A DNA stretch of 64,000 bases from Phaeosaccion multiseriatum (GCA_965112735.1 OZ218953.1:4836001-4900000), one strand, 5' to 3'. Positions 1-64,000 are shown, counted from the first letter of the stretch. A program made the numbers and translations. The notes: generated from the sequence alone by a model not told the origin.

Positions 1-744
1 GGAAGTAAGAATGCCCATGGACGGGTCCGGCAAGACCGCGCGCATCCCCCCGACTTGGAGGCTTCAGGTGAGCATGAGCGGATGCTGGAGATGTAGTAGT
101 CTCCGCGTATCTCCCTGATGAGGAGCTAGCTCAGTGCTTGTAGGAAGCAAGTACGTCTCGCGTAGTCTTTCGGAGAGTCCGTGTAGCTCACTGCCAACCT
201 CACACAAGCAGCCCATCCTTTCCCAACCTGTCCCCTTTCTTAACGCTCGCTCCAGCTTTGGGTTGAGTCCGCAGCCCTAGCAGACAGGGGCGTGTCGGGC
301 TTCTTCTACAGGGACGACCTCACGGAGTTCACGCCCTTGTCCCACCTGTGCGCGATGATCGCTCAGCAGGTCGAGAGGGAGCTTCTTCGGAAAAGCGAGC
401 AGCGGCGACAGAAACGGCAGCAGAAACGGCAGCAGCAGCAGCAGCAGCAGCACCTGAATGGTGGGGGCAACAGCAATCTTGCTAGCATGGGGGTGGAGAT
501 GATAGGGGAGCGTAGAGTCGGGGCGCCTCGCTTCAAGATCGACGCCAAGACTGGACGACGTGTAGATACTGCAGTACAGGGGAGGGAGGGGGGGGGGCAG
601 GAAGTCATACCGGCGGTGCGAGTCCTCCTCACGCTCCGTGGGGAACAAGTGTGCTTGGATAATGCCACGGTGGGAGAGGTGGATCTTTTCAACCGACAGC
701 AAGAGCTGGGGGCAGAGGTCAGGATTGAGGACCCCCAAAGGTAG
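1..744 (+). CDS. 3' end of a hypothetical protein gene (partial; last exons)
   Basis: Donor GTGAGC at 68 and an acceptor near 280-287; the terminal exon frame (292-744) encodes a polyQ-containing globular-looking C-terminus and ends in TAG. No family recognised. Confidence 0.45.
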
Positions 745-1139
745 CCCACTGCCCCGCTACACGAGATGGATGCCACTTGCATTTACGGAGGGGTGGGCTG
801 TCACGCTCACGAGCGGGCGTTCAGATGGTATAGATACAGTGAATGTATTATAAACTTGGAAGAGTATAGATTGAACACACCAACATCCACCCTTTTTGGG
901 GCAGAGGGTGTGGGGGCGGGGCGAGGCCCTTATTTCCATCTTTCCATCTATGCTCTATTCAACGAAAACCGAAACGGCCGCTCATACCCATCTCCCCCTC
1001 CCCCGCTCACAGTGTCACGTCACCAACCCCTGACCCACGTTAACGAACCAACCCTGTGTCGATCAGTTCCAAAGCCCCCAACCCATCTCCCCCCCCTTCA
1101 TAGTTATCTCCTCCTCTCGTCCTTGCGTGGACTGCTGAA

Positions 1140-3230
1140 TCACAGCCCCTTATCCCCCAGCCTGAACATGCCCTTGAGCATCTCAATGGTCTGCTTCTTG
1201 GACTCGGGCCCCTCTGGCGCGCGAAGGGCGGACATGGGGCCGTGAAGCATCTTGTTGACAATGCCTCTGGAGATCTTCTCTACCACCTCCCGCTCCTTGT
1301 CGCTCAGGTTGGACAGCTTGCTGCTGGCCTTCTTTAGCTCGGTCTGGCGCATGCCCTCAAACTTCTCCTGCATCTTGCTGATGGCAGGGATGGCAGACAG
1401 AGACTGTTGCCAGCCCCTGTTAAGACGCAAAACAAACGAGAGGAGGAGGAGGGCAGGGAAGGGAGAGGAGACGTGAGGACAGGGAAAAGAAGCGCAAAAA
1501 AAGTACGGCACGACAAACCTGCACAAAGTAAAGTGAATGCACATACAACAACCGCACCCACCGCCAGGCCCACACCCGTCCACCCTCTCTTGAATACCTG
1601 TGCAACAAATACCGCACCTGAACTTGAGCTGCTCCTCCTCCAAGATGCCCTCCGCCTCCATCATCTCGCGCCTGCGCAGCGCCGTGTTCTTGGCCACCAC
1701 CATCTTGAGGTCGTCCACATCGTAGGCAGACACGCCCTCAATCTCGTCGCAGCCTGACTCCACGTTACGAGGCACGGAGATGTCCAAAAACATGACGGGC
1801 TTATCCTTGCCCGCTCCGAGCCGGGCCAATTGCTCCTTGGTGACGATGCAGGCGGGGGCATTGGTGGAGGTGTAGAGAATGTCCGCCTCCAAGATTGCCT
1901 GCTCCAGGTCCGCCTCTCCGCCCCCGACACGAACGTCAAACTCCATGTCTGGGAACTCCTCCATCAACTCGGTGCAGCGAGGCATGCTCCTGTTCACCAA
2001 GATCACCTTCTTGACCCCCAAACTGCTCATATGCACAAGCAGGAGGCGAGACATGGTGCCGGCTCCGATGATGGCGAGCTTGGAGTCGAGGAAGGGCCTG
2101 CCGGTGTCCTTGAAGGCGCGGAGGTTTGAGAACTCCACTGCCGCACTGGAGATGGACACGGCCCCCTTGGAAATGGAGGTTTCCGAGCGCACGCGCTTGC
2201 CCGCCGACACGGCCGTGTTGAGCAGCCTCGACACCACCTTGCCGGCCCGCCCGTCTTCCTCCGTGCCGTGAATGTAGCACTGGCGCACCTGACTGAGAAT
2301 CTGGCCCTCTCCCACCACGAGCGAGTCGAGGCCTGCGCTGACTCGCAGCAAGTGCCACACGGCATCTTCTCCACTTAGCATGAACAAGCTCTGGCGAAGC
2401 ACGCTCTGCGACAGGCCCGACCTCTCGCACAGCATGTTGATGGCCTCTCGAATGCCCGCGCGAGAGTCGTGGCAAGCCACATAAATCTCAAAGCGGTTGC
2501 ACGTGGACAGGGTAGCAGCCTCCTGAATGTGGGGGTTGGACACCAGGCCCTCCGAGTGCGCATTCCACTCCGCCTCGGGCACGGCGAGCTTCTCCCGAAC
2601 CTCCACCGCTGCATTGTGGTGACTGAGTCCAATCACGTGCACCTCCAACGCCTTCCCAGCAGCCGCCTGGCGCGCCTTCTTGTCCATCTTCTGCTTCTTT
2701 GGGGGGTCCAAAATGGCCTTCTCCTCCGCCACCGCGCCAGCCGTCGCCACGGCCTCCTCCTCAGCCACCACCGGAGCAGGGGGGGCGACGGTGGCCGTCG
2801 AGGACGCTAGAGCAGACACACGTCGGGCATGCAGAGGAGTCTTCCTGCGGCGGTGGAACGACGCCGTCTCCCCGGGCTGGGACAGTGACATGACTCTGCT
2901 CTTGTCCACCGAGACGCCAATGCTGCTCGTCTCCTCCAAACCTCCTCCACTCCAGGACGACGAGGACAAGGCAAGCGCAGAAGGCGAAGTACCGTCGGCC
3001 ATCGTCCGACGAATATGGGGCGATGTCACGCAAACGGAGTGAGCCTGCCCGCCAACTGCGGATCGGCCCGAGGTGAACCTCGCAATGGGACATGAGCTGC
3101 TGCCGCCACTCCTGCCGTTACTGCCCCTCGCCGTGGCTGGGAAGGACGGCATGTAGCCCCGCGCGAGCCCGCATAGAAGCAACAGGTGTAGCCCCACCAG
3201 GCGAATAAACGCAGCCACCGGGCAGCCCAT
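1140..3230 (-). CDS. hemA: Glutamyl-tRNA reductase, plastid-targeted (exons 3230-1618, 1416-1140)
   Basis: Motifs LSTCNR.EIY, GLDSLVVGEGQILSQV, NADPH-binding IIGAGTM, DISVPRNV and C-terminal IVNKMLHGP. GT-AG intron 1617-1417 (201 nt, in frame). N-terminal signal peptide (..LARG-YM) followed by a Ser/Arg-rich transit peptide. Confidence 0.96.
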   Translation of the reverse strand: MGCPVAAFIRLVGLHLLLLCGLARGYMPSFPATARGSNGRSGGSSSCPIARFTSGRSAVGGQAHSVCVTSPHIRRTMADGTSPSALALSSSSWSGGGLEETSSIGVSVDKSRVMSLSQPGETASFHRRRKTPLHARRVSALASSTATVAPPAPVVAEEEAVATAGAVAEEKAILDPPKKQKMDKKARQAAAGKALEVHVIGLSHHNAAVEVREKLAVPEAEWNAHSEGLVSNPHIQEAATLSTCNRFEIYVACHDSRAGIREAINMLCERSGLSQSVLRQSLFMLSGEDAVWHLLRVSAGLDSLVVGEGQILSQVRQCYIHGTEEDGRAGKVVSRLLNTAVSAGKRVRSETSISKGAVSISSAAVEFSNLRAFKDTGRPFLDSKLAIIGAGTMSRLLLVHMSSLGVKKVILVNRSMPRCTELMEEFPDMEFDVRVGGGEADLEQAILEADILYTSTNAPACIVTKEQLARLGAGKDKPVMFLDISVPRNVESGCDEIEGVSAYDVDDLKMVVAKNTALRRREMMEAEGILEEEQLKFRCGICCTGIQERVDGCGPGGGCGCCMCIHFTLCRFVVPYFFCASFPCPHVSSPFPALLLLSFVLRLNRGWQQSLSAIPAISKMQEKFEGMRQTELKKASSKLSNLSDKEREVVEKISRGIVNKMLHGPMSALRAPEGPESKKQTIEMLKGMFRLGDKGL

Positions 3231-3560
3231 GGTGCTTCTGCAAAGAGAGACGGAGGGGGTGGGAGGTTTGGGAAAGTGAGATTTAGCATGAAAACGTCAC
3301 TAACCTCCCCCCCAGCCCCCCGCCCCGCACTTTCAAGCTCTGCGCCTCACCTGCACACGCCCTTAGCTGCTGGTTCTCCTCGGCCGCTGCCTCTCTCTAT
3401 TATATTAGCTCTGGTCTAATCAGTGCAAGAAGTTGAGGATGGAGAGTTGGGAGATTGTGGGGAGAGTCAGGGTGTAAGCCCCCTGGGGAAATCAATTACG
3501 TAATATTTCCTCGTATGTCAACTGTTGCATTCCTCTCTTTCTTATTATTGGCGACAGAGC

Positions 3561-6500
3561 ATGTCACGCCCCCCCTTGGTGGGTGAAGGGGTGCTTAAGC
3601 TGCATCGACAGCAGCAGGCCGCAGCATCAGCATCGGCATCAGCAGCAGCAGCAGCGGCGGCGGCGGCAGCAGCTTCGGCAGTAGCGCTTTCGGAACCGCG
3701 TCTCCAGGCATCTCAGCAGCAGCAGCAGCCAGTGATGTCAACAGCCCAGCCAGTGATGCAGCAGCCGACTGGGCCTCCGAGAGAGGTTCCCCTGGAGGAA
3801 GACATGAAGGTCCCCCCTCGAGCCACGCACTGGGCATGGAAGCACACGAGAGACGGTACGTTCACAAACAGCACCACTTATATTTCGAGTTTCACTGAAA
3901 GAAAACTACGCTCCGCAATCTGCCACCCTCTCCTCCATACTCCCTCCCTCCCTCCCTCCCTCCCTCCCCATTCCAACTCTTCCGCCCGCGCCCAGGGGAA
4001 GGCGTGTTTAGACTCATTTATGCGGGGGCGTCCACGCTGCAAGGCAAAGTGTGGTGCTTCTCGTGCCGAAAGGCCTTCTCCTACAGCAACAGCACCACTA
4101 ATCTTGTGAACCACATCCGCAGTGCTCACAAGAGCTTGTACACGAAGCACCAGAAAGAGGCCGATTCACCCGTCGGGAGCAGCGGGAGTGGACTGGGCAG
4201 CGGAACTCGTGTGGGAGACGGCAAGGGAGACGGTAGAAGTAGCGAAAGCCATGGTAGTGCTGGTCGGGAGCACACGAAGCGTACTACGGAGAAAAGCACG
4301 ATGGAGGTTGTGGCTTCTTCGCAGGCCAAGGTGACCGGTAAGTCGGCCTTTCGCTCTGCCTATGTGCAGTGGCTCATCTCAGACCTCTCGCTGCCTCTGG
4401 ACATTGGTGAGACGGACCACTTTATGAGAATGGTGCGGGCCGCCAGTGGCCGCCTCATGCCACCTTCGAGGGCTGTAGTAGAGAGCGATATGCGCGAGCT
4501 GCATGACTACTGCCTGGAGCTGGTCAAGAGCGCCGTTGCAGGGCAACACGTGGCCATGGCTACGCACGAGCGCGTGGCCACAACAGGAGAGGTGTATGTT
4601 TCCGTCGTTGGTCGCTTCATTGGTCAGTCCTGGGATGGGGTGACGCTTACGTTGAGCAGCAGAGGCTTCAGCTGTCTCGTAGGACCTGACCAGCTGGCTG
4701 GCGAGTTGATATCGGCACTCAAGTCGCACGGCCTGAACACGGACTGTGTTCTGACTTTCACCGCATCGACAGCACCAGCGCAAGCGTACCTCAGCCCTTC
4801 CATTGGGACCGCAACTGCATCCGCTCCTTCTGCTGCTACTGCCCTTGAAGGGGACAACAAACTCGCGCACCTCACGGCCGCCATGGGGCTGGAATTTGTT
4901 CCATGCTTCTCTCGCGGAATGGATAGTCTAGTCAGCCCGCAGCTGAGCACGACGTTCACGGGGTTGCTTGAGTTGTGTGACAAAGTCTCCAAGTTGGTGA
5001 CGTATCTCAAGTATTCTATGAGTACCACAAGCAGTGGGGCTGCTCCTGCTTTCAGCGGCGTCCAAGGAGCAAGGTTGGGCAGCAGTGGCAGTGGCAGGGG
5101 CGTCCGCGGCATTGATGTAGCCAAGCTGGTCGCGGCCCTGCAAGGGCGGTCCGGTTTTCAAGCCCGTCACTGGTCCACCCTGTACGGAATAACGACCGCA
5201 GTGTTAGAGCAGGAAGTCGCTCTCCGGGCCCTATTCCCCCCCGTTGCGGCAAGGTGTAGTGAGAATGGCGTGAATGGGAGCTCTCCAGCAGCACTGCCCG
5301 TGGAGCTGATGCTGGAGGAGCGGGAATGGGCGTTGATACGTGATGTGGCGACTGTGCTGACGCCCTTCTCGGACGCGCAAGACATGCTGTTTTCGGAGAG
5401 ATTCGTGACGCTGTCTTGGATTCCCGTCATCGTGTCCCATCTCTGCACGAGTCTAAAGGTGCGCGGAAGAGGAGAGTGGGACAAAGGGAGATGCAACGGA
5501 TTTTGAGGCTGTTTGCTGGAGTGCGCGGACTAAAGTAGAGAGTATCATTCACAGGGGCCTCATTCTGTGACTCGCGAGCCCACTCCCTACCTCTAGCCGC
5601 ACTCCAAGCTCCCTGAACAGTCTTTGTCCCTATGTCCCCCTAATCTGCCTCTTGCCCCTCCCGACACTGGTGCTTGCCAATTGCTCGTTTCCTTTTCCTG
5701 TCGTTGCCATTTGCCCGTATGGATCTCGATTTCTGTCCCCCATCTCCCCGTCGCTGTCCCCTGCAAACCTTCGCCTCCACAGGGGCTTGCGAGTCACCGT
5801 GATGATGTGAGTGATAGCGTCAAGACGTGTGCTGCAGCCCTGCAGGAGGTGCTTCACACTGCGTGGGCGACACTGCCCGACTGTACGGTGATTGCTGCGA
5901 TGGTGGATCCTCGCACAAAGTCCTTGTCGTGGCTAAGCTGCCAAGAAAGCAGCAACGCGGATGATACCACGTCGGCAGGGCAAGGGGGCAGTGGTGGTGA
6001 TGAGACAAACAAGGGTATTCCCGCCGGCCTCGTGGACTTCCGCGGGCGGGGTATGAGGCTGGTCAGAGCAGAGATGGAGGTGGTGGCGGGTGATGTGTTG
6101 AGCCCTGCGACATCGGGGGTGGAGGTGCGGCTCGGTCAGCAGCAGCAGCAGCAGCAGCAGCAACCGCTCCATAACGTCACGACGAGTGGAGGCGAAGGAG
6201 CAGGAGGAGCAGGAGAAGCGGGGCAACAGGAGGAAGGTGATGGAGAAGACCGCTTTCGATTGCACCGGAAGCGAAAGAGGCCAAGCGATGCATCTGCTGC
6301 CTCGGCTCCTCCTCCTCCTCCTCCTCCTCCTCCCAGCCTGGCGCTTTCGGAGGAGGAGAGGGCTTCTCTTGTCGCTGTGACGCTTTCGCGGGAGGAGAGG
6401 GCTTCTCTTGTCGCTGCTGCCGCCGTCGCCACCACTGCTGCTGTCCATTCTGCTGCGAGTGCCGCGGAAGTGACGCGCCAAGACCCTGCTGGTGCTGGTG

Positions 6501-6973
6501 CTGGTGCTGGTGCTGCTGGTGGTGGTGCTGCTGCAGAGCCTCCAGGCGTTGGGGTGCCAGAGCTAATAGCGCAGGAGCTCCAAGCCTTCACGAGTACCCC
6601 GGGTATTGATTTCGCTGGGGACCCGCTGGAGTGGTGGAAAGCTCGAGACGCCGCCCCCCACTTCCCCTGCCTGAGCAGAGTGGCACGCAAGTTCCTTGCC
6701 ATTCCAGCCACGACGCGGACTTCTCCTTTGGCGGATGCTCTCTTGAGCACCCACCTGGCGAAGCACACTGCGGGGGGCGGGGGGGGTTATGTCGGGCCCG
6801 CTTCTGCTGCCCCTGCGCATGGAGGGGCGGGGGCAGCAGACGGGGGTTCAGACGGAGTCGGGGGGGGGGCGGCCGAAGCAGCAGCTGATCTTGTGGGGCA
6901 GCGTATTCTCCTCCACGGCAGCTTGGACCAAGCTACACGATTGGACCAAGCTACGCGATGTAAAAAACAATGA
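3561..6973 (+). CDS. hAT-transposase-derived BED zinc finger protein (ZBED-like), probably domesticated and inactive (exons 3561-3855, 3996-5458, 5783-6973)
   Basis: BED finger (HWAWKH...CFSC...STTNLVNHIRSAH), hAT core remnants (WSTLY, EREWALIRDVATVLTPF, AAMVDPRTK) and hATC dimerisation motif DPLEWWK...FPCLSRVARKFLAIPAT. Splice phases are consistent. No TIRs seen. Confidence 0.85.
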
Positions 6974-7156
6974 CTAGCCGCTTAAGCCAAGGGTATTTAC
7001 TTGACAAGGGCCGGACAAGGGCCAGACCCAGCTCCAGTTTCAGTTTCAGATTCCTTTCCAACACTTCTCCTCTCTCTCCCTCCTCTCTCCTCTCTTGTGT
7101 CTCTGTCCCTCTGTCCGGGCCTATGCTCAAGCCGGACAGTCGAATAGACAAAGATC

Positions 7157-10100
7157 ATGCCGAAGAGAGCGCTTGGTGCGTGTGCCGTGCTGTCTTACGC
7201 GGTACTTGTGGAGGGTTTCAGCAGCACGCTCACCACCACGAGAAGTTGCACTACGCTAAGGAGCAGCTGTAGTAGCAGCGGCAACACCAATTGGCAGACA
7301 TGGCTCAAGCAGCAGCACCACCAGACAGCCGTGAAAAGGATGGGGCGGAGACAATCTACGCAGCAGGGACGTGGCTTGAGCTTGAGCGGTCTGTGTGGCC
7401 GTGGTGGTGGCACAGGTGTGGCGATGGCAGCCAAGAGTGCTGAGGAGGAGGAGGAAGAGAAGGCGGAAATGGAAGAGCTGGAACAGTTGCGGCAGTCGAC
7501 TCTATCTGCGTGGAAAACCATGGCGAAATCTGGGCAGCTCGAGGAGGGAAAAGTGAGTCAGCTCTCCGTTCAGAGGCTTTTGTGTGTGTTGGAAAGGGGG
7601 CGAGAAAAGGGAGCTCACCAACAGTTGGTTCATCCCCTCGTCCACCACCTTATCCTCCCTCCTCCCAACCTGTCAACTCTTCATGTCCTCCTGTCTCCTC
7701 CAATCCCGAACCTGAGCTTTTCTCTCGCCTTGTATCAAACTTCCAGCTGACCACGCACACCCTACTTTCTCCGCATGAACTCCAGATTAGACGACAGCTA
7801 GAAGAAGAGGCGACTATGGACGCGCTCATGGAGGAGGAAATGGCTCGGATTGGCGGAAAGTCAAGCAGGAGAAGCTTGATCAAGGAGAAGCTGCAGGAGG
7901 GGGAGGGAAGGGGGCAAACGCAGCTGTCGGACGATGACTTGCTCTTCGGCGGCGATGAGGACGACGAGGACTTCAACGCCTTCTTTCAGCAAGGACTGCA
8001 GCGGCAGCAGCAAGGTTGGCTGGGCTCGGGGGGCCAGGGAGGGGGGCGCTCCAGGAAGAAGGGGGAGGAGGAAGAGGAGCTAGAGCGGCGAAGGCTGGAA
8101 GCCTCGTTACCCGACTGGAGAGGCGTATTTACCACTGTACGGTCAAGGAGGGAGAGGGACAGGGCCAGAGCGAACCCCCGAGCGGCTGCGGGTATGCCCA
8201 TCATCAAGGCCTCTCAGGAGACACAGCAGCTCAAGGCGGAACAGGCAGCAGAGGCGGCGAGAGTGGCAAAACAGGCCAAGAAAAAGGCCAAAAAGGCCAC
8301 TCAGGGGGACTCGGAAGCCTCGCGGATGCTCAAGGAGATGGGTATGCAGATTGCAATGCCGCTGGAAGAAGTCGCGGACGACGACATCTTGTTGGATCCT
8401 CAGGTGGACCCTTTTGCAGAGTACGACGACGACGAGCTGATTTGGGACGAGCAGGAGTGGCCAGAGGACGAGGAGGAGGACGAGGACAGGGAAGAGAAGG
8501 AAGGAGGCGAGGAAGAGGAGGACGAGGAGTGGGAGTGGGATTACGATGATGAAAAGGAAGAACCCCACAAGGATGATGCGTCCACGTTGAGCACCCCCGT
8601 GGCCTTTTCTGATCCATACGCCGAAGAAGACGAGAACTTCTACAGTCTCTTCTCCTTTAAGGAGCCCGCTTCCTTGCGCGGTTGGCTCAAGGCGATACGA
8701 GACGCTGACGCCGACGAGAGGGACGCCCGACTGGTGCATGCCATTGCACGAAAGGCCGCGGGAGTGGCGGAGAGCAAGGGGCTGGCCAGGGATGAGCTGT
8801 ACATCGAGGCCATGCGGATCGTTGCGAGGCTGGGGCGGCTGGACCTGGCGCTTGAGGTGGAGAAGCTTCGGATGCGCCTGCTCAAGAAGACTGTGCTGCA
8901 GGGGTATGACATGACAATGACCGTGGGGTTGGCCGTGGCGTGCCTACGCAACAATCAACCGGCGGATGTCGACATGCTTCTGGAGCAGACGGGTCGCTCG
9001 GTGGGCGAGAAGGGTGTGTTTGCAATACTTTCGGCGGTGCTACCGGAGAAGCTGGATCTGCTGCTGAAAAGCCAGGCTGAGGCGGCCGCGGCAGTCGGGG
9101 GTTCGAAAGAGGCGAGTCGAGGTCCGGCAAGGTGGGAGACCGAGGGTAGGCCGGCGATCAAGGACAAGGGCAAGAGGAGGGAGGGAAAGAGGACAGGGGA
9201 GCAAAAGCCTCTCTCCACGGCGGAGCTTGCTATAGTCGCACAAGTGGACGGCGTGGTGGAGGAACTCTTTGCGCTGGGGAGCAAGGCGGTTGGCCCCAAG
9301 GCCGTGAAGCTGGACGCGAGCTGCTACAATGCATTCATCCGTCTTCTCGGCAAGGCGGCCCGCCTAGACGACGTGATGCGAGTACTCGACCACATGAAGG
9401 ACGACTGCGGCATCATGCCCAACATGGAGACGTACGAGTTTTTGACCAATGCCTTTGTCAAGGATGTGCAGTTTGACGTGCAGAGCATCAGCATGGCCAC
9501 GCTGCCCAAAACCTCCCTGCCCGAAGTGGTGTTTGCCGGACGCTCCAATGTGGGCAAGAGCAGTCTCGTCAACATGATGGTGAACCGTAAGACACTTGCC
9601 CCGATGAGTGATCGACCTGGCTTCACGCAGCATTTCAACTACTACATTGTCAACAAGGACCGCCCGGACATGCCCTCCTTCTATCTCGTGGATGTGCCGG
9701 GCTTGGGTTACGCGGAGGCGGCCGTGGGGAGGATTGACTCGTGGCGGAACACCCTGCAAGTAAGTGTCCCTCTTCTGTCCCCCTTCCATTCCTCTTCCCA
9801 TGCTCCCCATCTTGATCCTCACACTTTCACACGCATGCTTTCTCTCTCCTGCACACACAAACCACTCCCACAGCGCTACATTGCCGTCCGGGAGAACCTG
9901 ACCGCCATCTTCCATCTCATTGATGTGCGCACGGGCCCGCAGCCCACGGACCGGGACCTGATGGAGATGGTGAAGGAGTACAAGCTGGAGGGCAGCAAGT
10001 ACTTTGTCGTGCTCACCAAGTGCGACAAGGTCAAGGACAGTCAGATCGAAAAAGTGCTCCAGGAGGTGGCTGAAGTGCTTCCGCATTTCTCCCTGAGCGA

Positions 10101-10278
10101 TGACGAAGGTGCCGGTGACAACAGCCAATCCGATGCAGCAGCAGCAGCAGCAGCAGTGGGTGGGGGAGAAGGGGACAGGCAGTCGCAGATAGAGGGGGTC
10201 AAGGTGATGCTTTCGAGCTCCAAATCTCGCTTGGGCCGGGACGACTTATGGAAGGCGCTCATGACGGCGGTGCTCTAA
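7157..10278 (+). CDS. engB: EngB/YihA-family ribosome-biogenesis GTPase with an upstream PPR-like repeat, probably plastid-targeted (exons 7157-7552, 7786-9759, 9874-10278)
   Basis: PEVVFAGRSNVGKSS (G1), DVPGLGYA (G3), TKCD (G4). PPR-like repeat CYNAFIRLLGKAARLDDVMRVLDHMKDDCGIMPN. Signal peptide ending VEG-FS. Confidence 0.88.
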
Positions 10279-10317
10279 GGAATGCACAGAGCATAATATA
10301 AAATCGGATGTAGTTAG

Positions 10318-11040
10318 TGTTATCGACCACATTCTCGATAGCATGCTATCGGCCGCCGGCCGATAGCAAATAGCACGCCGGCTGGCGCCGGCGATAGCAG
10401 ATAGCACACCAGTAGCGGATAGGCGGCCCAAATCGCGCCGAGAGCCTCAACAACGCGTCGGGTCAGTCCACAGAATTTGATCAATCCCGCTTTTTTTTCT
10501 GCCCGGGGTCCCTAAAGGGGACTTGTACTGCCCAGAACACGAATGGGAGTGGAGAGCACCAAGGAAGGCAGTAGAGGAGAGGGACAGGCTTCATGCGAGT
10601 ATCTAGGGACGTGCTCAGCATCATAGAGCAGGGCAAAAAAGAGGTAGGGTTGGGGGAGAGGGGTGGTCTGAAGTGGCTGAAAGAAGGCCAGCGACGACGT
10701 CCGCGCTGGCGCATGACTTTGAAGTACAATTTTTTTGGCCCCATCATCTGTCGCGAAGCCAGCCTAGGCTAATGAAGCCCCAATCAACTGGGCTGAAACC
10801 CGTCCAACACTAAAGTAACCCCGGATAGCCGATGCCAGCGGTACCATGGTACCATGCTCAAGCGGACGCGCGTCAGAGCGCGTCAGGGGCTGGCGGAACA
10901 AGCCCACTGAGCCCACCATTGACACAGCAGGCGCAGCGCGGCCGGCCGGCCGGTAGCAGGTCAAAGCCGGCTGTATACATGATAGCATGCCGGCTGGCGC
11001 CGGCGATCCTGGCGATGGCGCGATGGTAGTTCGCAGATAG
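10318..11040. mobile_element. Degenerate remnant of the TCGACCCCTG-terminus element family seen at 55.7-56.5 kb
   Basis: 10321-10420 and 10953-11005 match the reverse complement of 55803-55876 and 55690-55752 (e.g. CATTCTCGATAGCATGCT, TAGCAGGTCAA.GCCGGCTG). TIR-like GCGCGTCAGGGG near 10878-10889. Confidence 0.7.
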
Positions 11041-46354: not shown

Positions 46355-46882
46355 TCGCCCCCGTGCACGCCTAGCGGTCTAGGCTCTAGGCCGCTAGGCC
46401 GCTCGGCCTTCGGCCGAAATAGGCCTAGGCCGGCGGCCTCCGGCCGCTCTAGGCCGCTCACTTTTCAGCCCTAGGCGGCCTATAGCCCGCCTCTAGGCAG
46501 CCTCCCAGTGACCGTGGGCGCGTGCGTGGTGCCGTCCAGCCAGTGGGTAGCAGCACACCTGTAGGCCTGCACTCCTCGTAGGGCCAGCGAGGCGGAAAGA
46601 GACAACACGGACCAACTAGCTACTCCTCACTTATCCCATGCAATACATTTGCTTAAAGCTGACGACACTTGGGCGGGTTCCGGGCCAGCCAGCCCAAGGG
46701 CATATGAGCATATTCCCGGCCTGGACCTGCGCCTAGTTGGCGTCTGCCGTAGGCCGCGGGCCTCCGGCCCCCGCCTAGGCCGCCGCCTAGGCGGCCTATA
46801 AATAGGCCGAGAGCCTACGGCCCTCGCTAGGCCGGGCAATTTTCCAAAATAGGCCTAGGCCGCTAGGCGTGCACGGGGGCGA
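46355..46882. mobile_element. 528-bp MITE with a 23-bp perfect TIR and 6-bp TSD
   Basis: TIR TCGCCCCCGTGCACGCCTAGCGG (46355-46377 / 46860-46882), TGAGTG directly on both sides, many CTAGGCC/GGCCTAG subterminal repeats. Confidence 0.88.
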
Positions 46883-52965: not shown

Positions 52966-55166
<2,201 letters not shown>

Positions 55167-55667
55167 TTCTCGGGATGCAAACTGAGGGTCAACAAGGACA
55201 TGGCACAGGACTCACAGGAGAGGGTAAACTCCAGGAGCGGAGGCTGCTACTCTTGCCAACAAGCGCTCAAGATGGGAACACACACCTTTCCTTCCGCCAC
55301 TGGAGTTTGCGCCCGATTGTGCTATATAAAAGGAACGAGATGATTTATTCCTTCCATTAATATTCTACCGTCCTGCCTCTCTCTTCCAGAGCGGCGCCGT
55401 TCCCCCAAAGAGGTTCAGTGAGAAAAGCTCGGCTTGGCTCGAGAATAAATACACAAGGCAACACAAGGGAGCACCCGCGCTCCCCACGGAATGAATTCTT
55501 CGCTTGCAGAGTCTAGCGTCACGCGTCACAATCGTGTTTCCTGCCTGTCTGACTCTGCACTGCAGATTGTAGTGAAGAGAACAAGAGGAGCGAAGAAAGA
55601 TAGGGGAGGCAATCGCCCTCCTTCAAATCATCTGGGAGCAGCCCTCCCTCCCTCCCTCTCTCCCTCC

Positions 55668-55892
55668 TGTCGACCCCTGACGTGCTAAATCGCCGGCGCG
55701 CAAAGCGCCAGCCGGCGTGCTATCTGCTACCGTCAGCCGGCCTTGACCTGCTAATGAACGGCCGGTCGATCATCTCCCACCCCCCCCCTCCCCTCCCCTC
55801 ACCGGCGCCAGCGCTAGGGCGTGCTATCTGCTGTCGCTGGCGGCCGAAAGCATGCTATCGAGAATGCGTCGATAGCACGTCAGGGGTCGACA
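55668..55892. mobile_element. 225-bp MITE with a 20-bp perfect TIR
   Basis: TGTCGACCCCTGACGTGCTA / TAGCACGTCAGGGGTCGACA, flanked on both sides by TCCCTCC within a (TCCC)n tract. Confidence 0.85.
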
Positions 55893-55981
55893 TCCCTCCC
55901 TGCCCTCCCTCCCTCCCCCCCCCCCTCCCTTCCTCCGACCCCCCGCCCTCCCTCCCTCCCTCCCTCCCTCCCTCCCTCCCT

Positions 55982-56363
55982 TCGACCCCTGACACGCTAT
56001 CCGCTAACGCTATCGCCGGCGCCAGCCGGCACGCTATCCGCTATCTCCGGCGCGCTATCCGCTATCGCCGGCGCAGCCGGCTCGCTATCCGCTATCGCCG
56101 GCGCGCAGCCGGCTCGCTATCCGCTATCGCCGGCGCCAGCCGGCGCGCTATCCGCTATCGCCAGCGTCAGCTGCTACCGCCCCCGGGGGGGGGGGGGGGT
56201 AGGGGGGGAGAGCTGACGCCAGCCGGCGCGCTATCCGCTATCGGCCGGCGCCAGCCGGCACGCTATCCGCTATCGGCCGGCGCCAGCCGGCACGCTATCC
56301 GCTATTGGCCGGCGGCCGATAGCGCGCTATCGAGAATGTGAGCGATAGCGTGTCAGGGGTGGA
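55982..56363. mobile_element. 382-bp MITE of the same family with an internal array of about 31 bp
   Basis: TCGACCCCTGACACGCTATC / GATAGCGTGTCAGGGGTGGA (1 mismatch), CTCCCT on both flanks, repeated GCTATCCGCTATCGCCGGCG units. Confidence 0.85.
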
Positions 56364-56709
56364 CTCCCTCCCTCACTCATCGACCCCTGACGTGCTATTA
56401 TGCTATCTGCGATAGCATGCTATTGGGCGCCCCGGCGCCCAATAGCATGCTATTTGCACTCGGCGAATAGCAGATAGCACGCCGGCTGGCGCCGGCGAAT
56501 AGCAGATAGCACGCCCCGTCGCGCCGGCGATAGCAGACGCCCTGCGACAGCCTTTCCACTCCTAGCTGCCTGCCTAATCAGCATACGTCGAGCGCAGAGA
56601 GTATGCGAGCCTTCAGTCTTATATTACCAATACAATGGTGGCTGGGCGAACCTTGGCGTTCCCCTCTCCCCCCATCTCCCTCTCTCGCGAGGCAGCCATC
56701 TCTCCTTCA

Positions 56710-59508
56710 CTAACCCAGGACGCACTTATGCAAGGCCGAGTTGTAAACGTCGGGCAAGGAACCGTTGCGCATCCCGGAGCTCAGGTACGCCCGAAAGAGG
56801 CGAGTTCTCTCTGCCTCATACTCTTCGCAGGTCAGACACGGCAGCCCACACGCGGCCAAGAAGCGGTCCACGGTCTCCTTCTTTGCCCCCGCCGCACTAG
56901 ACAAAATCGCTACACCGTCGTCCCTTTCCCAGCTGTTGTCTTGCTCAACACCATAGAGCACTTTGCGCACGGGGCTGGTGTCTGCCACAGCCAATTTCGA
57001 CATGAATAGAGCTGTTGCCGGACCGCAAGAATTCGAGCCGGCCTTCTGCTGTGGCACACCAACAAAGACCTGCCGGAATCGGAGGGCTGCCGTCCCAGGG
57101 GCTCTTTCGTCCTCCATGACCTTCTCCACATACACCTGCGTCGCTTGGAGCACTCGCTTCGAAGGGTGGTGACCGAGGCGCCCATTTCGGACCGTATCAA
57201 AGTGCAGAATGTACGCCATAGCACCCTCCCCGTCGTCACTAGCTGCAGAGGTAGGTAGAAGGACAGCGACAGTCGAGAAATGGCCGCTGAAACTCGCAGG
57301 GAGGACGAGGAGCTCACACTTCGTCATTGTAAGACCAGACTCCCTGTAACCTTTCGGCAGGAACCCTTTCGGAGCCGTCGCCAACACGTTGGGCATGGGG
57401 GAGTTCTCCACAGCTGGGTTGAAAATGTGACCAAGAGACGCGCACGGGAGTAGTGCCCTGTTTCCGTTCACGGATACAGTGGTCATCATCGCGTCCAAAA
57501 AGAAGGAGGTGTACTCCCCCTTTTCCTTGTGCATGTCCTGCTCAGCGCCGAGGACAAGCAGCCTCGCCTTCATGTCCCCTGTCAGCTGCTCAGCTTCGGC
57601 CACTGATTGTGCCGCAGGCATGGCCCTGCTTTTCTTCTGGTGGGAAGAAGGGCTGCTGCCCCCCTCCTGCTCCTCCTCCTCCTCCTCCTCCTGCTCCTCC
57701 TCCTCCCCCCCCTCCTGCTCCTCCTCCTCCTCCTCCTCCTCCTCCTCATCATCATCATCATCATCACCACCACCATCATCCTCCTCCTCCTCCTCCTCCT
57801 CCTGCTCCTCCTCCTCCTGCTTCCCCAACGCCGTCTTCAGTAGGAAGTGAGAGAGTGCAGCTTGCATGCTTTTCTGACCGCTCGATGAGTGGGAGTCTCT
57901 GTGGCGCTTAACGCCAGACAAATGAGTCCACTGAGGCTTGTACTTGCCCTTCCCGGCGCTCTGACAAGCAGGCCTGGTGCACACAACAGATACCAGCATA
58001 TCCAATGATGTTCTGGCGTGTCTGATGGAGAAGTTCGCTTTGGCCTCAAGCTGAATCAAAGCTGGCGTATGGATCTTCACGAAGCTTGCTGCATCACCGA
58101 CCTTGCTTCCGCTGAGAGTTTGCATCTCCACATCAGGCATTTCCCGCAAAAGATAAAAGAACTTGGTTCCTTGCGCGTGGAGCCAGCTCTTCGCCTTCTT
58201 CGTCAGTGCCCCCTCTTGCCCCGCCTTCCCGCCTTTCGTCCCGCCGGCACTCTCTCCCTCACTATCACTGGTGGTCTCACTGACACGGGCAGCACCACCT
58301 CGATGACCTGCCTTCTTGGGTGGGGTATGGGTCGAAAAATCTGTGGCGCTGTCCAGAGATTGGGTAGGGAAAGACAGGCAAATTTGCACGTTCTCCTGCT
58401 GTCTCGCCCCTGATTTCGGGCGTAAGCTCGCAGTACAGATCCAGTCTCCACCGTTTGTCGGGATCGATACGGCCCGGAGGGAAAGTGTAGAACGAGCGCA
58501 CCTGTATTGGGTGTGTGTTGGAGAAAGAGACAGAGAGGGGCGGGGGGGGGGGCGGGTTTAAGAAAGGGTTGCTGCCGTAGCAGACAATGCACAAACATCG
58601 AGAGGCAGTTGTACCCGACACGTACCACGCGGCGCAGGGAGACGTCGTCGCGGATTGTATCCAACCCTCTGCCACGTCTGAATGCCGTGGAGGCTCTGAT
58701 CGTGATGTCGTTCTTCTTTTGTTCCGTCTGAAAGAGCAATTCGCTGGTCAAATGTCCACGGAAGGCCTTGAAGCTGGAGAATCGCTTGTCTTCATTAGCC
58801 AGCTGGAACGTGTAGGGCAAGGTCTCGAAGAGCTCGGTCGTGTTGCAGGACACCGATGTGCCGAGACTGAAATCAGCCTCGACGGGGTTGAGGCATCCTC
58901 TTGGAAATGTCCCCACATGCGCGAACATGAGAGGGGTAGGTTTTGCCTGTCCCATCCCTGCACTCAGGGGCAAGGCATAATCGAAGTCTTGTGCCTCAGA
59001 AGACGATGCCAAGGTTGCCGTACTCTGGAGATAGGTGTCCTCAAGCCGCCCCCCCTCCTCCCACCCCAGCTCGTGAGAAGCGTGTTGTGAATGGCTGCTT
59101 CGGCGTACTCCCCTGTCGCTGGGACTTTGGTTCCGACGCATTTTCCTCGCGCCTGCTGGGAATCCTCTTTCGCTGGGACTGCGGCCCCGTCTCCCTTTGC
59201 TTCGACCCTTTTCTCCTTCCCTCCTCCCTCCTCCTCCTCCGGATCTGGGTCGGCTCCGACTCCTGCTGGTACTTCTCCCTGCCCTCCTCCTCTCGGTGTC
59301 CTTCCCCCTACTCTGACTCCTGCTGGCATTTCTCCCTCGCTTCCTCCTCTCACTGTGCTTCTCCCTGCTCCAACTCCTGCTGGCACTCCTCCCTCTCCTC
59401 GCCCTCTCAGGGGCCTTCTCCCGGCTCCGACTCCTGCTGCCAACTGGACTTGGCGTGCCTCTCCTGCTGTTGTAGTAGTCGCCACCCCCCCCCAACTCCT
59501 CCCTCCAT
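56710..59508 (-). CDS. Ulp1/C48 SUMO-protease-domain protein with RS-rich N-terminus, zinc finger and acidic tract (exons about 59508-58626, 58501-58390, 58307-56710)
   Basis: Catalytic H (SGHFS), D (HFDT) and Q...C (VPQQKAGSNSCG); CTRPAC...KRHRDSH finger. Splice phases are consistent. The start is uncertain: ATG 59508 is off-frame by one base across a G9 run. Confidence 0.8.
59254..59450. repeat. 57-bp coding minisatellite (about 3.5 copies) encoding 19-aa RS-rich repeats
   Basis: CTC.(G/A)ACTCCTGCTG recurs at 59254, 59311, 59368 and 59425. Confidence 0.85.
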
Positions 59509-59617
59509 CGCGGCCAGACATGAAGGACTTTTGAACCAGTGGGGCCCAGCCATGGGCCCAGCCAGCTATAAGCCAATAAAGATTCTGCCGTTTCACATTT
59601 GGCCACAAACAAAGGCG

Positions 59618-62600
59618 ATGGGCGCCGCGGGCTCGTCCGCGACAGAAGAAGACCATGGGCGGGTGGCTGTGACGGAAGACGCGGACAGCGGGCGTGTAGA
59701 GCTTACCCGGGACGTAAACGATGTCGACATTGTTCCCTTTGCGATCCAATTCCATCTTGATCGAGGGCACTTTACTCGGAGTCACTTCATGTATCAAACG
59801 GTGCATCGTTGGGTCATGAACAGCGGCCTTTGGTCCAGGCGTCAGACTGTGGCCGCGAGCAAGCAGCTCAATGGCTACGAGACGCTGCGACAGTTTAATG
59901 AGACCCAGCAGAACGTATTTGGTTCAGCATGCTCCATGCTCTCCTATGGGGCACCCCGCAGAAAGAAGGTTCGTGGCCCCAACGTCTCCAGGGACCAGGC
60001 CATGAAGGACTACTTCCGCAGGGCGAACACAGGCGGCTTTCATCCGAGAGCACTCATTAGGCGCAGGCCTGGCCTAATCAAGAGGTACGGTCTGCAAGTC
60101 GAAGACATTATCAACGTCGTCAATGTCTTCGCCCGCTTCTGTGCCGACCAAGCCTACACTCTTGGCGACAAAGGCAACGAGAAGATTGTGGTTCCCGTGA
60201 CTGTCAAAATGGATGGCTTCGTCATTGCCAAGGGCCATCATACTGATACAACCAGCCAAACCAATTGGGGCAATGCACATCAGTTTGGAAATACAACACT
60301 GGAGCAGGCGAAGGCAATACTGGAAAAGTCTGATGCTCAGGTGCGTGGCGTCCCCTCCTTCCCACTGATCTTTCGGGGCAGAATCACTGTTGATCCATCG
60401 TCAATCTTAATCACGCCTCCTCGCTCGCTCGCTCACGCTGCAGCCCCGCCTTTGCTTCGCCTCCTGTCAACCCTCCCTTATCGCTACTCGTTCTGTTCCA
60501 GCTGCGAGACGAGGACGCACCTAAGCTGGGTTCCGAGATGATGGAAGTTATGATGATGGATCTGAAAGGGGCATACACGGGCTCCATCGGTTTTCAGCTT
60601 CACACCGCAGGGGGTGACTACAAAAGTGTTGCCGCGAGCGTGACCGAAATCATGAAGGCGCTGCGTGTTTGCATCCCTTGTCTCGAGCTTTTCTGGCAGC
60701 GGATTCTGACGGGGGAGAACCCCTCGTGGGTGGAGATGGGCGAGGCGTGTGATTGCCACCAAGCTTGTCCCACCGGAGGGGAGGGTCCTTGCGGTGAAAG
60801 TGAGTGCGTTTGCGCGACTCAGTTCTCCAGCAGAGTCTGCTCGAGGTGCAAGAGGAAAGGGCTCGTGTGCAAGAGTCTCCGACCATTGTGCATCTCAACA
60901 GACTGTAATGGCGCACAGCTTGCCTTCATTCGGAAAATGGCGGCAAGAACCCTCGGAGAGGACGACCCCCTGGGGTGGTATGAGGCACTGCCTGACGGGG
61001 CTCACCTTGTAAAGTGTGTTCGTGCTACGACATTCAATTGGTGGGTCGTCTGCCAGGGCTGGCTAGTCGGACTGCGAACTCTTCGCGCCAGATTCCACGA
61101 TCTGGACCCGGCTCGAAGTGAAGCAGTACAAGCCAATGTTGGCCTTGACGCCATTGAAAACAAGGATCCTTTCTCAGTGGAGAGCGCAATCGCTGTTACG
61201 ACGGCGTCTCTGCAGTTGGCTCTACTCTCAGAGGAGGAGCGGGAGAAGCGCCGTGCTCTCGTGGGGGTGACCGTGTGCCCGGAGCCGTGGGGTTTCTGGC
61301 ATCAGAACATGGCCTCGCAGACTCAGAAGCCGACTGGTATGGGCTACCATCATGGCTCTGGCATGATCTTCAACGCCGATCGTTCAGGCAGGCATCTGCG
61401 CATGCTCAAGGCCCATCATGTGCCTTGTACCACAGAGGTTGTTCTGCGAGACGACTGCTTCCAGAGTCTTGGGTCTCTCGTCGTGGTTGGCGACTACGTG
61501 TACATGTGTGACAGTGGAGCGAATCAGATTTGGGTGGTGCATGTGCTGGCCGCTCTTCCAGGAAACAGGGGACCCCGCGCGGCGGCGGAGGAGGGCGACG
61601 ATGATGATGACGACGACCAGCAACCGGACGGGCATGTAGCAGCGCGTGGTCGGGGGAGACAGACTCAGCAACGGCATTTGAATTTGAAGGCAGTGCCCTT
61701 GGTCCGTCGGATCCAGGAGCGTTGCACTTCTGAGGAGAATGTCCTCGAGGAGAGAGAAGAGGAGGGCATCCGTTGCCCCGTTGCCATTGCGCTTGCCGTG
61801 TCCTCTGAGCGCGCGTTCGACCTCTTTGTCACCCAAGAGGAACCTGGCGGGGGGGGAGCACTACACCGGCTCTCATTTGACGCTGGCAACCCTTTTGCAC
61901 CTGTGAGCGAGAAGCTGTGTGACCTACCCAAGGGACCTGCGGGCCTCACAGCACTCTCGCATGACTGCGTTGCCTGCATCGCCGACAGCTCGCTTTTTGT
62001 CTGGGAGGGCAATGTGGAACGTGCCGGAGGACCAGAGGGTGGCAGTGGCAATGACGGAGATACACTCATGGCTCTGACTGATGACGAGGAAGATGGTACT
62101 GTTGAGAAGCCAAGGCGCGCACACCTCACGTGCGTGAAGTCTCACGTGGGGACTCAGCCTTGTGGACTCACGTTGGCCCCACCCGGTGCATACGATGATG
62201 AAGATGTGATCGTCATCCTCATGCTAGATGAAGGTTTGCATGCGCTTGTCAAGGTTCTCCTTCGTCGTGACAGTGGGGTGCTAAGCTGGAAGGGATCATC
62301 CGTGCTGATGGGCGGACAGGGAAACACAGAACCCGGAGAGAGCACTGCCAGCGGTACGGCATCGAAAGTACCTTTGTTCAGACCTACGTTCGGCTGCTTC
62401 GTGTACAACGCTTTCTTCTTGTCCGACACTGGAAACCAGTGCATTCGAATGATCTCGGACTGCTACGTCTACGCCCAGCACCTCATCCCACTACAACGGA
62501 TGTTGAGTGAGGCGTATCAGCTCCAGGGCGAAGACTTGGATGAGAATGGCAAAGACATGCAAAACAACGCACGCACGATGAAGGAGAGCATTGCCAAGCT

Positions 62601-64000
62601 TCATGTGGTCGACTTGGCTCTCAGTCACATGGGGAAAGCGATATCAGCTGCCACAGGCAAATCCCTGGTCTCTCTCCAGGGCCCTGAAGGAATGCCATCA
62701 CGCGAAGTTCGAGGTGCTATCAAGGCGAGCCTGCAGGCACTACCTCGGATGCTACATCGGATGCTTGCAGAGGTGAGAAGGGGGGTGCTCCCCATGGCTG
62801 TGTGCGTGTGTGTGCGTGAGTGCGTGAGTAAAAATGTCCGTGTCCGTGGGCGCGTGCGTTTGGAAATCAGCCTTGCCCTTTCGTCTCACGGCTTCGCTGT
62901 TCGCTCCTTGCTTGATGCTTCCTCGCTCATTTCCGTCAGCAGGGAGTGCCTCGCGGCATCGTGGAGAAGATGCAGATGAGGAGCGTTTTGACCCTCAATG
63001 TTGAGACTTTCTTCACGAAGCAAAGGGAAGGCCGCCAGGATGTTCCAGACGCTCTTGAGTATGCCCGAAGAAGGGGCCTTGTGATGCTTGAGGCTGCGAA
63101 GAAGGCCAACCCCAGCATGGGTTTTGCCTACTGCACAAGCAGCGTCAACAGCAGCGGTCGAAAGCTCAGGGCGGGATACCAGCTGGAGCAAAACGAGAGC
63201 AGATTGGTGGCTTCACCCGTGTTGAAGCGACCAAGGGTAGCGGAGAAGCTTGACGAAGGGCAACGGAAGCAGCGCAAGAAGGACACGCAGACGCTTCGCA
63301 ATGCGGCGGCTCGTCTTAGGAAGGTTCCGCAGCAGCGTGTAACCAACAAGAGGAAGTACAATGTTGGAGCGGCCCCGCGTTCGGTGGCGTTTGCTCCCAA
63401 CTCTGCGCAAAGCAACGACCCGAGTGGATACCTGTCGCGCTTGCATGAGAGCTCGGGAGCGAGGAAGCGCGGACAGAAAGGACGGAAGACCGGTGAATCC
63501 GTCCGAACTCGCATTCTCTACAGGGCAAATGACGTTGTGATAGTCAGGGCAGACAAGGGGTCGGAGGAGAGCTTTTTTCTTGCACAGCTTCGCGTCGATC
63601 TTCGGAAGGAGGTGATCGTCTCGAAGAAGGGACGAGGCTCCAAGCAGAAGGTGGTTCCGGCAAAGCCTGGTGTTTCATACTTTCACGTCGCTGAACAGGA
63701 CTCTACCGACGAGTCCCAGGACGGGGATGGGGCTGCAGCAGTCGTCTACGAAGTCGACGGCGGGAAAGAGGCTTCTGTGTCTTGTGCTGCCATTTATGGC
63801 GCATTGCCCCGCTACCACGAAGCAATGTACATCGAAGGCTCACATGCAGCTTCAGGAGGGGTGTGCGCGCAGAGAAGGCTTCGGAGGTTTGCCATCACGG
63901 AGGAGCAGCACGAGGAGTGCAAGCAGATTGTCAACAGAGAGGCGGAGGGCCAAGAGGTGGCCAAGGCGATGGGATACGCCCCCCCCGACCCAAGCGTGCA
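59618..64000 (+). CDS. P-element-like DDE transposase with a Cys cluster and NHL beta-propeller insertion (exons 59618-60340, 60502-62772, 62943->64000; 3'-partial)
   Basis: D1 VKMDGF (60212), D2 ISTDCNG (60901), DxxH PDGAHLVKCVR (60994), NKDPFSV, and E in LTLNVETFFTKQR (63003). All introns are phase 0 and the last exon is open to the window end. Confidence 0.75.

Follow-up and report, generated by a model that had tools for sequence, protein, structure and literature searches.

A Probable Two-Gene DNA Transposon of a P-Related Lineage, With an NHL-Propeller Transposase and a Ulp1-Like Partner Gene, in Phaeosaccion multiseriatum

Introduction

The DNA analyzed here is a 64,000-nucleotide stretch of the Phaeosaccion multiseriatum assembly (OZ218953.1:4836001–4900000; "the window," with positions counted from its first letter). 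From position 56380 onward it probably holds an autonomous DNA transposon of the cut-and-paste type with two genes, seen from its left end through most of its body, in which a long plus-strand transposase gene stands head-to-head with a minus-strand partner gene that likely encodes a divergent Ulp1-type cysteine protease. The copy is probably a real and intact transposon of an undescribed P-related lineage. The evidence that carries this reading consists of a P-type fold in the transposase core, catalytic and zinc-binding residues conserved across the family, an NHL propeller within that core, a complete relative bounded by terminal inverted repeats (TIRs), 6-bp duplications at related elements, and numerous short derivatives with the same ends.

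To our knowledge, few structural variants of P-type transposases are known, and the only one whose structure has been solved needs GTP, a requirement rarely met with in transposases. That a propeller occupies the site of the GTP-binding domain on the same scaffold bears on the role of that insertion domain, and the combination of a DDE core with a propeller and a PHD finger parallels RAG1/RAG2, offering a second system in which to ask why recombinases recruit such modules. Ulp1-type proteases have been gained repeatedly by unrelated transposons. The protease-bearing family described here is tractable in this respect: the copy looks intact, its partner gene is apparently transcribed, and the family has the protease both as a gene of its own and on the strand of the transposase. 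Members found in mussels, corals, priapulids, and metagenomes of the ocean are filed as uncharacterized proteins, such that naming the family would also aid annotation.

Transposase Gene, Family, and Fold

The plus-strand gene is read in three exons. Exon 1 (59618–60340) encodes an N-terminal domain made of helices together with strand 1 of the RNase H fold, and the codon of the first catalytic D lies at 60212–60214; the corresponding part of the structure model described below aligns with P transposase from residue 128 on. It is followed by a 161-nt GT..AG intron (60341–60501) that was read from the sequence and across which the exon frames and the family alignment join. Exon 2 (60502–62772), placed by relatives and by the NHL profile, encodes a nine-Cys zinc cluster (60670–60870), the second D (60901–60903), the motif DGAHLVK (60994–61014), a helical linker, and the NHL propeller (~61324–62460). 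The second GT..AG intron (62773–62942) is 167 or 170 nt long, as its acceptor lies at 62939 or 62942, either of which keeps the frame, and the resulting junction between RMLAE and GVPRGIV is consistent with relatives. Exon 3 (from 62943, or 62940, to 64000) is still open at the window end and carries VETFFTKQR, whose catalytic E is encoded at 63003–63005, and RQxRVTxK. A possible chromatin-reader-like segment in this exon (BAH/PWWP-like, language-model score 0.74) is a weak lead. A first-pass annotation, made from the sequence alone, had described an uninterrupted head-to-head gene of more than 1300 amino acids with D/D/DxxH/E motifs. The motifs, the orientation, and the length hold (241 + 757 + 352 codons so far, >1350), though the gene is open only once the two introns are removed. 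Contigs from public sequencing runs, which may derive from the assembly's own sample, confirm the reading frame up to 62200.

A word-indexed homologue search with exon 2 returned no match, and the family emerged from an exhaustive phmmer search of 1.8 billion representative sequences, which found 103 relatives at E ≤ 0.001, the best of them 32–44% identical. Nearly all are of metagenomic origin, from the ocean and elsewhere, and of the 20 looked up none has an informative name (all are unnamed or hypothetical). Family members share a fixed order of features—MDG with the first D, nine cysteines that hardly vary, sDC with the second D, PDxxHxxKS, a long insert, then QGPxGnfS, VETFFxxxR, and RQxRVTDK—and some end in a PHD finger, detected by Pfam at the C-terminus of the closest relatives (E 5e-7 and 9e-8). 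The catalytic residues (D, D, H, K, and E) recur throughout the family, and the exon junctions of the window gene agree with the family alignment.

The long insert is a six-bladed NHL propeller. The family profile matches Pizza, SOQ1, and NHLRC2 (E 3e-17), and the Pfam NHL model matches 8 of 21 family members. A structure model of relative P0006 (residues 60–1110, i.e., 1051 residues; predicted local distance difference test score [pLDDT] 90, predicted template modeling score 0.89) contains a propeller that superimposes on the Lin41 NHL domain with Z 27.6, and window positions 61324–62460 align to this propeller. Because the propeller swamped fold searches of the whole 1051-residue model, the part preceding it (P0006 60–525) was modeled separately (pLDDT 90).

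Searched with Foldseek against the Protein Data Bank (PDB), this core model had significant matches only to two complexes of the P element transposase from Drosophila (6p5a and 6pe2, E 3.8e-6 and 8.3e-6; next match 0.25). VIA-align, which is independent of Foldseek, gave the same answer, with Z 9.4 over 281 residues of P transposase 128–438 and Z 5.5 for the next-best chains, which are retroviral integrase cores. Among Swiss-Prot models, the top two for the core were P transposase (E 1.3e-6) and human THAP9 (E 7e-4). In sequence comparisons, only NHL propellers were significant when the family profile was run against PDB sequences; the best non-propeller match was again 6p5a, over the second-D/DxxH region, at a non-significant E of 0.61. 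Further, PF21787 (TNP-like RNase H N-terminal domain) scored 22.2 bits against a cutoff of 24.6 in a distant member (P0050), and a Mytilus homologue has a faint precomputed match to this Pfam model. In the structure model of P0006, strand 1 bears the first D, the second D follows just past strand 4, DxxH comes past strand 5, and E is on a helix after the insertion; the zinc cluster occupies the stretch from helix 1 to strand 4. By this secondary-structure placement, D, D, and E would be the catalytic residues of an RNase H-fold DDE core. The predicted fold supports the long protein being a deep relative of the P element and THAP9 transposases, in agreement with the first-pass annotation, which had called it P-like: in the Foldseek comparison, run on the model of P0006, P transposase was the only significant PDB fold match (E 3.8e-6), and it and THAP9 headed the Swiss-Prot models.

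A Complete Relative and the Ulp1-Like Partner Gene

A homologous pair of genes is found in L001, a 10,965-bp metagenome contig that contains a complete element at 87–10813 (10,727 bp). Its TIRs are perfect over 23 bp (TCGGCCCCGGACACGACTTTTCA, starting TCGGCCCC), and subterminal arrays of GCGACTTT and GGGCCGCAGGCCC palindromes lie at both ends, analogous to the repeat block of the window. Inside them, a transposase gene with a PHD finger at its end stands head-to-head with, and 34 bp from, a minus-strand gene whose last exon matches the Ulp1-like domain of the window (E 5e-10). We regard the window end and its two genes as one element because the complete L001 matches them in the type of its TIRs, in how its subterminal repeats are built, and in its head-to-head pair of genes, and the single element that had been proposed at first pass is thereby supported.

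The partner gene of the window is encoded on the minus strand. As assembled, its open reading frame (ORF) spans 56710–58389, with the stop 170 bp inward of the subterminal repeat block, just where a Ulp1 gene had been reported to end. A 124-nt GT..AG intron (58502–58625; ends GTACGT..ATACAG) is exactly skipped by a contig of public run X5, and the first exon seen in transcripts (58626–59448) encodes an Arg/Ser-rich N-terminal part and overlaps 57-nt tandem repeats. As X5 contig 23 spans 57830–59448, the true 5′ end of the gene is at or beyond 59448. The window assembly has an A at 58424 that splits the gene into two ORFs; it is absent from all four public runs and probably reflects either a mistake in the assembly or a difference between strains. 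Once this A is omitted and the intron spliced out, the minus-strand frame is open for 925 codons (59612 to 56710) and so gives the order of the protein: an Arg/Ser-rich N-terminal part and then, in the last exon (56710–58501), a finger-like CxxxxC..HxxxH motif (57889–57984), a Glu/Asp-rich acidic low-complexity tract (57663–57818), and the protease-like domain. The acidic tract is encoded by a long, perfect or near-perfect (CCT)52 trinucleotide array at which the contigs of all runs break. The 57-nt tandem repeat (~3.3 copies, 59253–59439), situated in the 5′ part of the gene near the presumed divergent promoter, is accompanied in run X5 by a 147-nt skip that is probably a repeat-number variant.

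The Ulp1-like domain (56713–57402) has His (57280), Asp (57196), Gln, and Cys (57025) in Ulp1 order, in the motifs GHFSTV, LHFDTV, and PQQKAGSNSCG, and the Ulp1-type catalytic motifs are also kept in L001 and L002. A clear-cut C48 domain does occur in the family: in L008, a European Nucleotide Archive metagenome scaffold, a same-strand ORF (6314–9157) just downstream of the transposase ORF (P0022) ends in a canonical Peptidase_C48 domain (Pfam E 4.9e-21). The Asp and Gln..Cys motifs of the window domain are in register with this C48 domain (pairwise E 0.054), and language-model neighbors of the window domain are Peptidase_C48 in 74 of 100 cases (best score 0.95), as are 58 of 100 for the L001 counterpart. 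A profile of the Ulp1-like domains found no match among PDB sequences, nor did a word-indexed homologue search with the Ulp1-like part find any. The Ulp1 identity assigned at first pass thus stands as to catalytic residues and neighborhood, not as to a significant profile match of the window protein itself, and on sequence grounds we consider the partner gene likely to encode a divergent Ulp1-type cysteine protease. The Ulp1-like gene is separate and convergent in L002, and across the family the protease is a separate gene in some members and lies on the transposase strand in others, perhaps fused.

Between the two genes of the window lies a short divergent intergenic region (59449–59617), presumed from the head-to-head layout to be a bidirectional promoter. 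Similarly tight divergent spacing occurs in L001 (4549/4583) and L003 (2118/2261).

Element Ends, Short Derivatives, and Extent of the Copy

The window is GC-rich eukaryotic DNA (55–61% GC) with short GT-AG introns. The sequence TCGACCCCTGACGTGCTA begins at 56380 and occurs five times in the window at ≤3 mismatches, against 0.06 expected from shuffles. The left TIR (TCGACCCCTGACGTGCTAT, 56380–56398, plus strand) is complementary at 19 of 19 positions to 55872–55890. We fixed the terminus at the TCGA tip at 56380 because public-run contigs from other loci share this end and diverge from the window exactly there (loose ends in read contigs fall at 56380 and 56360). Inward of the TIR is a subterminal block rich in ATAGCA/GATAGC motifs (56399–56540), composed of a perfect 20-nt palindrome (56412–56431/56434–56453) and ATAGCA-rich 32-nt tandem units (56461–56537). 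Summed read depth in the end region is ~30x that of the genes, and the block is thus repeated across the genome. Both the TIR and the palindromic subterminal repeats had been noted at 56380–56540 in the first-pass annotation and are present there. Its description of the TIR as unpaired is accurate within 56380–64000, though the same end is paired twice just upstream.

These pairs are formed by the other four copies of TCGACCCCTGACGTGCTA, which lie as two inverted pairs directly upstream of 56380 and delimit two non-autonomous relatives: a 221-bp element (55670–55890) with perfect 20-nt arms containing the same 18-mer, and a 382-bp element (55982–56363) inside a (TCCC)n microsatellite with CTCCCT at both flanks. 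The end at 56380 is the third of three same-family ends stacked in a single (TCCC)n/CT-rich tract (55640–56400). A sister-family short element at 46355–46882 (ends TCGCCCCCGTGCACGCC..., also given as TCGCCCCCGTGCACG...) is cleanly flanked by the 6-bp duplication TGAGTG in unique sequence, and the flank of the 56380 end, CACTCA, is the reverse complement of TGAGTG. The 6-bp duplications in related elements are TGAGTG and CTCCCT in the window, and TATATT in Mytilus. Insertion sites seen are CT-rich or microsatellite DNA, or an intron. The handful of flanks available (window, L001, and loose ends) hints that polypyrimidine, CT-rich microsatellites are preferred as targets.

The element probably extends past the window. 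In three of four public runs aligned to 56300–62200, the transposase unitig stopped 2516–2517 nt past 62200, near 64716 and ~716 nt beyond the window, which is probably the start of a repeated right subterminal region. The element is thus probably ~8.4–8.7 kb long, running from 56380 to ~64.8–65.1 kb, and its right end, ...TAGCACGTCAGGGGTCGA followed by CACTCA, is predicted at ~64.7–65.1 kb. An exact search of metagenome contigs for this predicted right end gave a single chance match, in a bacterial-looking contig (L009).

It is possible, if unlikely, that the family is real while this copy is not a complete autonomous element, such that 56380 is a third truncated short element or the right end has been lost or rearranged. 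The (TCCC)n tract already holds, immediately upstream, two short elements that have this end, which makes a third solo end plausible; moreover, the right end is not seen, and the partner gene as assembled is frameshifted by the extra A at 58424. However, the unique end unitig (56381–56495) has a depth of 523, like that of the gene unitigs (530–579), and overlaps the unitig that runs into the Ulp1 gene. The extra A is missing from four of four public runs, leaving the partner frame open over its 925 codons, and the transposase exons are open. Finally, the unitig stop near 64716 in three runs is as would be seen for a repeated right subterminal block, and the layout is the same as that of the complete L001. 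We therefore favor an intact copy.

Run X5 covers 56493–59448 and leaves 59452–62200 bare except for faint cover around 61500. X5, for which no library type is recorded, is most simply read as RNA from a sample in which the partner gene was expressed and the transposase was not.

Several side observations concern repeats and flanks. CT-rich flanks also occur at L001 and at the loose ends of other loci. A degenerate relative of the short-element family lies at 10320–11020, with ATAGCA and GCCGGCTGGCGCCGGC subterminal motifs 83–87% identical to 56262–56515; intact TCGACCCC tips were not found in it. A perfect or near-perfect (AAC)39 trinucleotide array is located between genes at 54145–54262.

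Mobility of the Family

In animals, the family is represented by proteins annotated as uncharacterized in Priapulus, Mytilus, Paramuricea, Porites, Oculina, and Exaiptasia. In Mytilus trossulus, a 10,756-bp member (L011, 3767–14522, on a chromosome) is bounded by 14-bp TIRs (GAGGGGGGGCGAGA) and a 6-bp duplication (TATATT), has subterminal CCCGG/ATCCCG repeats, and lies within a Reeler/laminin-G gene, in one of the introns. We saw no ORF of the Ulp1-like kind there.

These relatives bear on whether the two genes of the window could instead be host genes, domesticated or never mobile, beside unrelated short transposons. In keeping with that idea, gene depth is uniform, no second copy occurs within the window, the partner gene is apparently expressed, and THAP9 sets a precedent for a domesticated P-like transposase. 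On the contrary, the same gene pair in the same orientation lies inside perfect TIRs of the TCGNCCCC type in L001, the family keeps its catalytic D, D, H, K, and E, the Mytilus relative is an insert in a host intron bounded by TIRs and a target duplication, and relatives are distributed patchily over many unrelated metagenomes and animal genomes. We consider the host-gene explanation very improbable.

Several observations nevertheless weigh against an intact, autonomous, P-related transposon. First, the window ends inside the transposase gene, such that the right TIR and the duplication of the 56380 copy would lie beyond it, and contig-depth ratios for the copy number of the full element are inconsistent between runs. 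Second, the structure was predicted for a relative (P0006) that is 33% identical and not for the window protein, and Pfam searches of the window ORFs and exon pieces returned nothing beyond low-complexity noise, with no P/THAP9 match. Third, the window's own partner protein has no significant Pfam/hidden Markov model (HMM) or PDB sequence match to Peptidase_C48, and the N-terminal domain common to the partner proteins of L001 and L003 has no HMM match in it. Fourth, the flanks of L001 (CTTCAC/TCATCT) show no matching duplication, and that contig may be a chimera of copies. Lastly, the transposase gene is uncovered in run X5 and, if X5 is RNA, was not expressed there.

A Proposed Mechanism

Taking the window copy as an intact two-gene transposon, we propose the following mechanism. 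The transposase has a helical domain for DNA binding that resembles that of P and, after it, a DDE core with the RNase H fold. It departs from P in having no THAP domain, a nine-Cys zinc cluster between the first and second D, and an NHL propeller in place of the GTP-binding insertion. Transcription would diverge from the gap of ≤ ~170 bp to yield the transposase and an Arg/Ser-rich, finger-bearing partner ending in a Ulp1-type protease. The D/D/E core would cut and rejoin the TCGA-tipped ends and make a 6-bp staggered cut in the target. The subterminal arrays may be binding sites for the helical N-terminal domain or for the finger of the partner, as with TnpA of En/Spm, and the propeller may take on the DNA-holding role of the GTP-binding domain. 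A PHD finger, where present, could steer the complex to particular chromatin, while the protease might strip SUMO, or a tag like it, from proteins of the host or of the element and so favor transposition.

A more far-reaching conception, which we offer as tentative and rather doubtful, is that the family constitutes an undescribed superfamily-level sister of P in which propeller and PHD finger act as a built-in RAG2 counterpart. Here, the PHD finger would read chromatin marks and the propeller would hold transposon or target DNA in place of GTP, which would give a preference for CT-rich (TCCC)n sites, while the Ulp1-type partner would free silencing or repair factors of the host from SUMO. This, if true, would be a second, independent DDE recombinase to have recruited a propeller–PHD module.

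Comparison With Known Systems

The family shows one of the six features that define the P superfamily, the fold core, and departs from the other five. With P and THAP9 it shares a helical DNA-binding domain and RNase H core, the motif order D, D, DxxHxxK, ExFFxxxR, a sizable domain that interrupts the RNase H fold at the same place, presumably cut-and-paste transposition, and TIRs with internal binding-site repeats. Yet at E up to 5 neither the window exons nor 21 family members gave a THAP match, the N-terminus leading directly into the helical domain, and the P-element GTP-binding-domain model had no match in the 21 members; the inserted domain is a six-bladed NHL propeller. P elements have 31-bp TIRs beginning CATG. 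They also make 7–8-bp duplications, as opposed to 6 bp in the related elements here, and carry a single gene between CATG tips, whereas this family has two genes between TCGNCCCC tips (TCGACCCC in the window, TCGGCCCC in L001). The nine-Cys cluster between the first and second D, the C-terminal PHD finger of relatives, and the second, protease-like gene further distinguish the family from P, and sequence similarity to P is below Pfam thresholds. In the literature we found no P-like transposase described with an NHL or other propeller, a PHD finger, or a Ulp1 partner; a Repbase entry may exist.

Among other named superfamilies, Dada elements make 6–7-bp duplications, lack TIRs, and insert in small RNA (tRNA or snRNA) genes (PMC3706591), and their DDE transposases are ~1400 amino acids long and have a DxxH motif (PMC3706591; Kojima and Jurka, 2013). 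Shared with our family are duplications of 6–7 bp, a long DDE transposase that contains DxxH, zinc motifs, and domains set inside its core, and occurrence in protists and aquatic animals. Membership in Dada or in KDZ/Zisupton is nonetheless very improbable: the first is suggested by shared 6-bp duplications, DxxH after the second D, a variable insert between the second D and DxxH, a large protein, and hosts among marine protists and animals (PMC3706591), and the second by its similar cysteine clusters and Ulp1 association, but fold searches pick P, Dada motif contexts differ (KMDSTKKV, YVDRDCC, LDVWHFMRRF, STSLESFHLHLNR; no ETFF or ENFF motif in Dataset S1 of PMC3706591), and no KDZ or CxC Pfam match occurs in 21 family members, even at E 5. 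The catalytic residues of Dada-U6_DR (D567, D635, E811; PMC3706591) make this concrete. Its two D residues are 68 residues apart with no cysteine cluster between them, compared with ~185 here, and 176 residues separate its second D from E, leaving no room for a propeller, compared with ~550 here (a by-eye comparison with Dataset S1). Dada, which inserts in small RNA genes, is without TIRs (PMC3706591), propeller, or partner gene, in contrast to the perfect TIRs of 19–23 bp found here. Models of the KDZ/Zisupton core and CxC cluster and the MULE Pfam model likewise found no match in the 21 members at E up to 5. That the element fits no named superfamily, as first proposed, is upheld against the families tested (P, Dada, and KDZ).

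The family resembles the Ulp1-carrying transposons of plants and of fungi and fish (KI-MULEs, CACTA, and Zisupton/KDZ elements) in retaining a C48-type protease, whether in a gene of its own or joined to the transposase, and it displays both protease arrangements (separate in the window, L001, and L002, vs. L008). It differs from them in its transposase superfamily and in a protease that is, except in L008, far more divergent.

Finally, RAG1/RAG2 and RAG-like transposons share with this family a DDE recombinase, a six-bladed propeller, a PHD finger, and two genes (a likeness of architecture only). The core lineages differ, as Transib/RAG1 matches reached only E ≥ 0.25 and Z 4.1–4.8, and the propeller is of the Kelch type in RAG and of the NHL type here. 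In RAG, the propeller and PHD finger reside in the separate RAG2 protein, whereas here both are built into the transposase itself.

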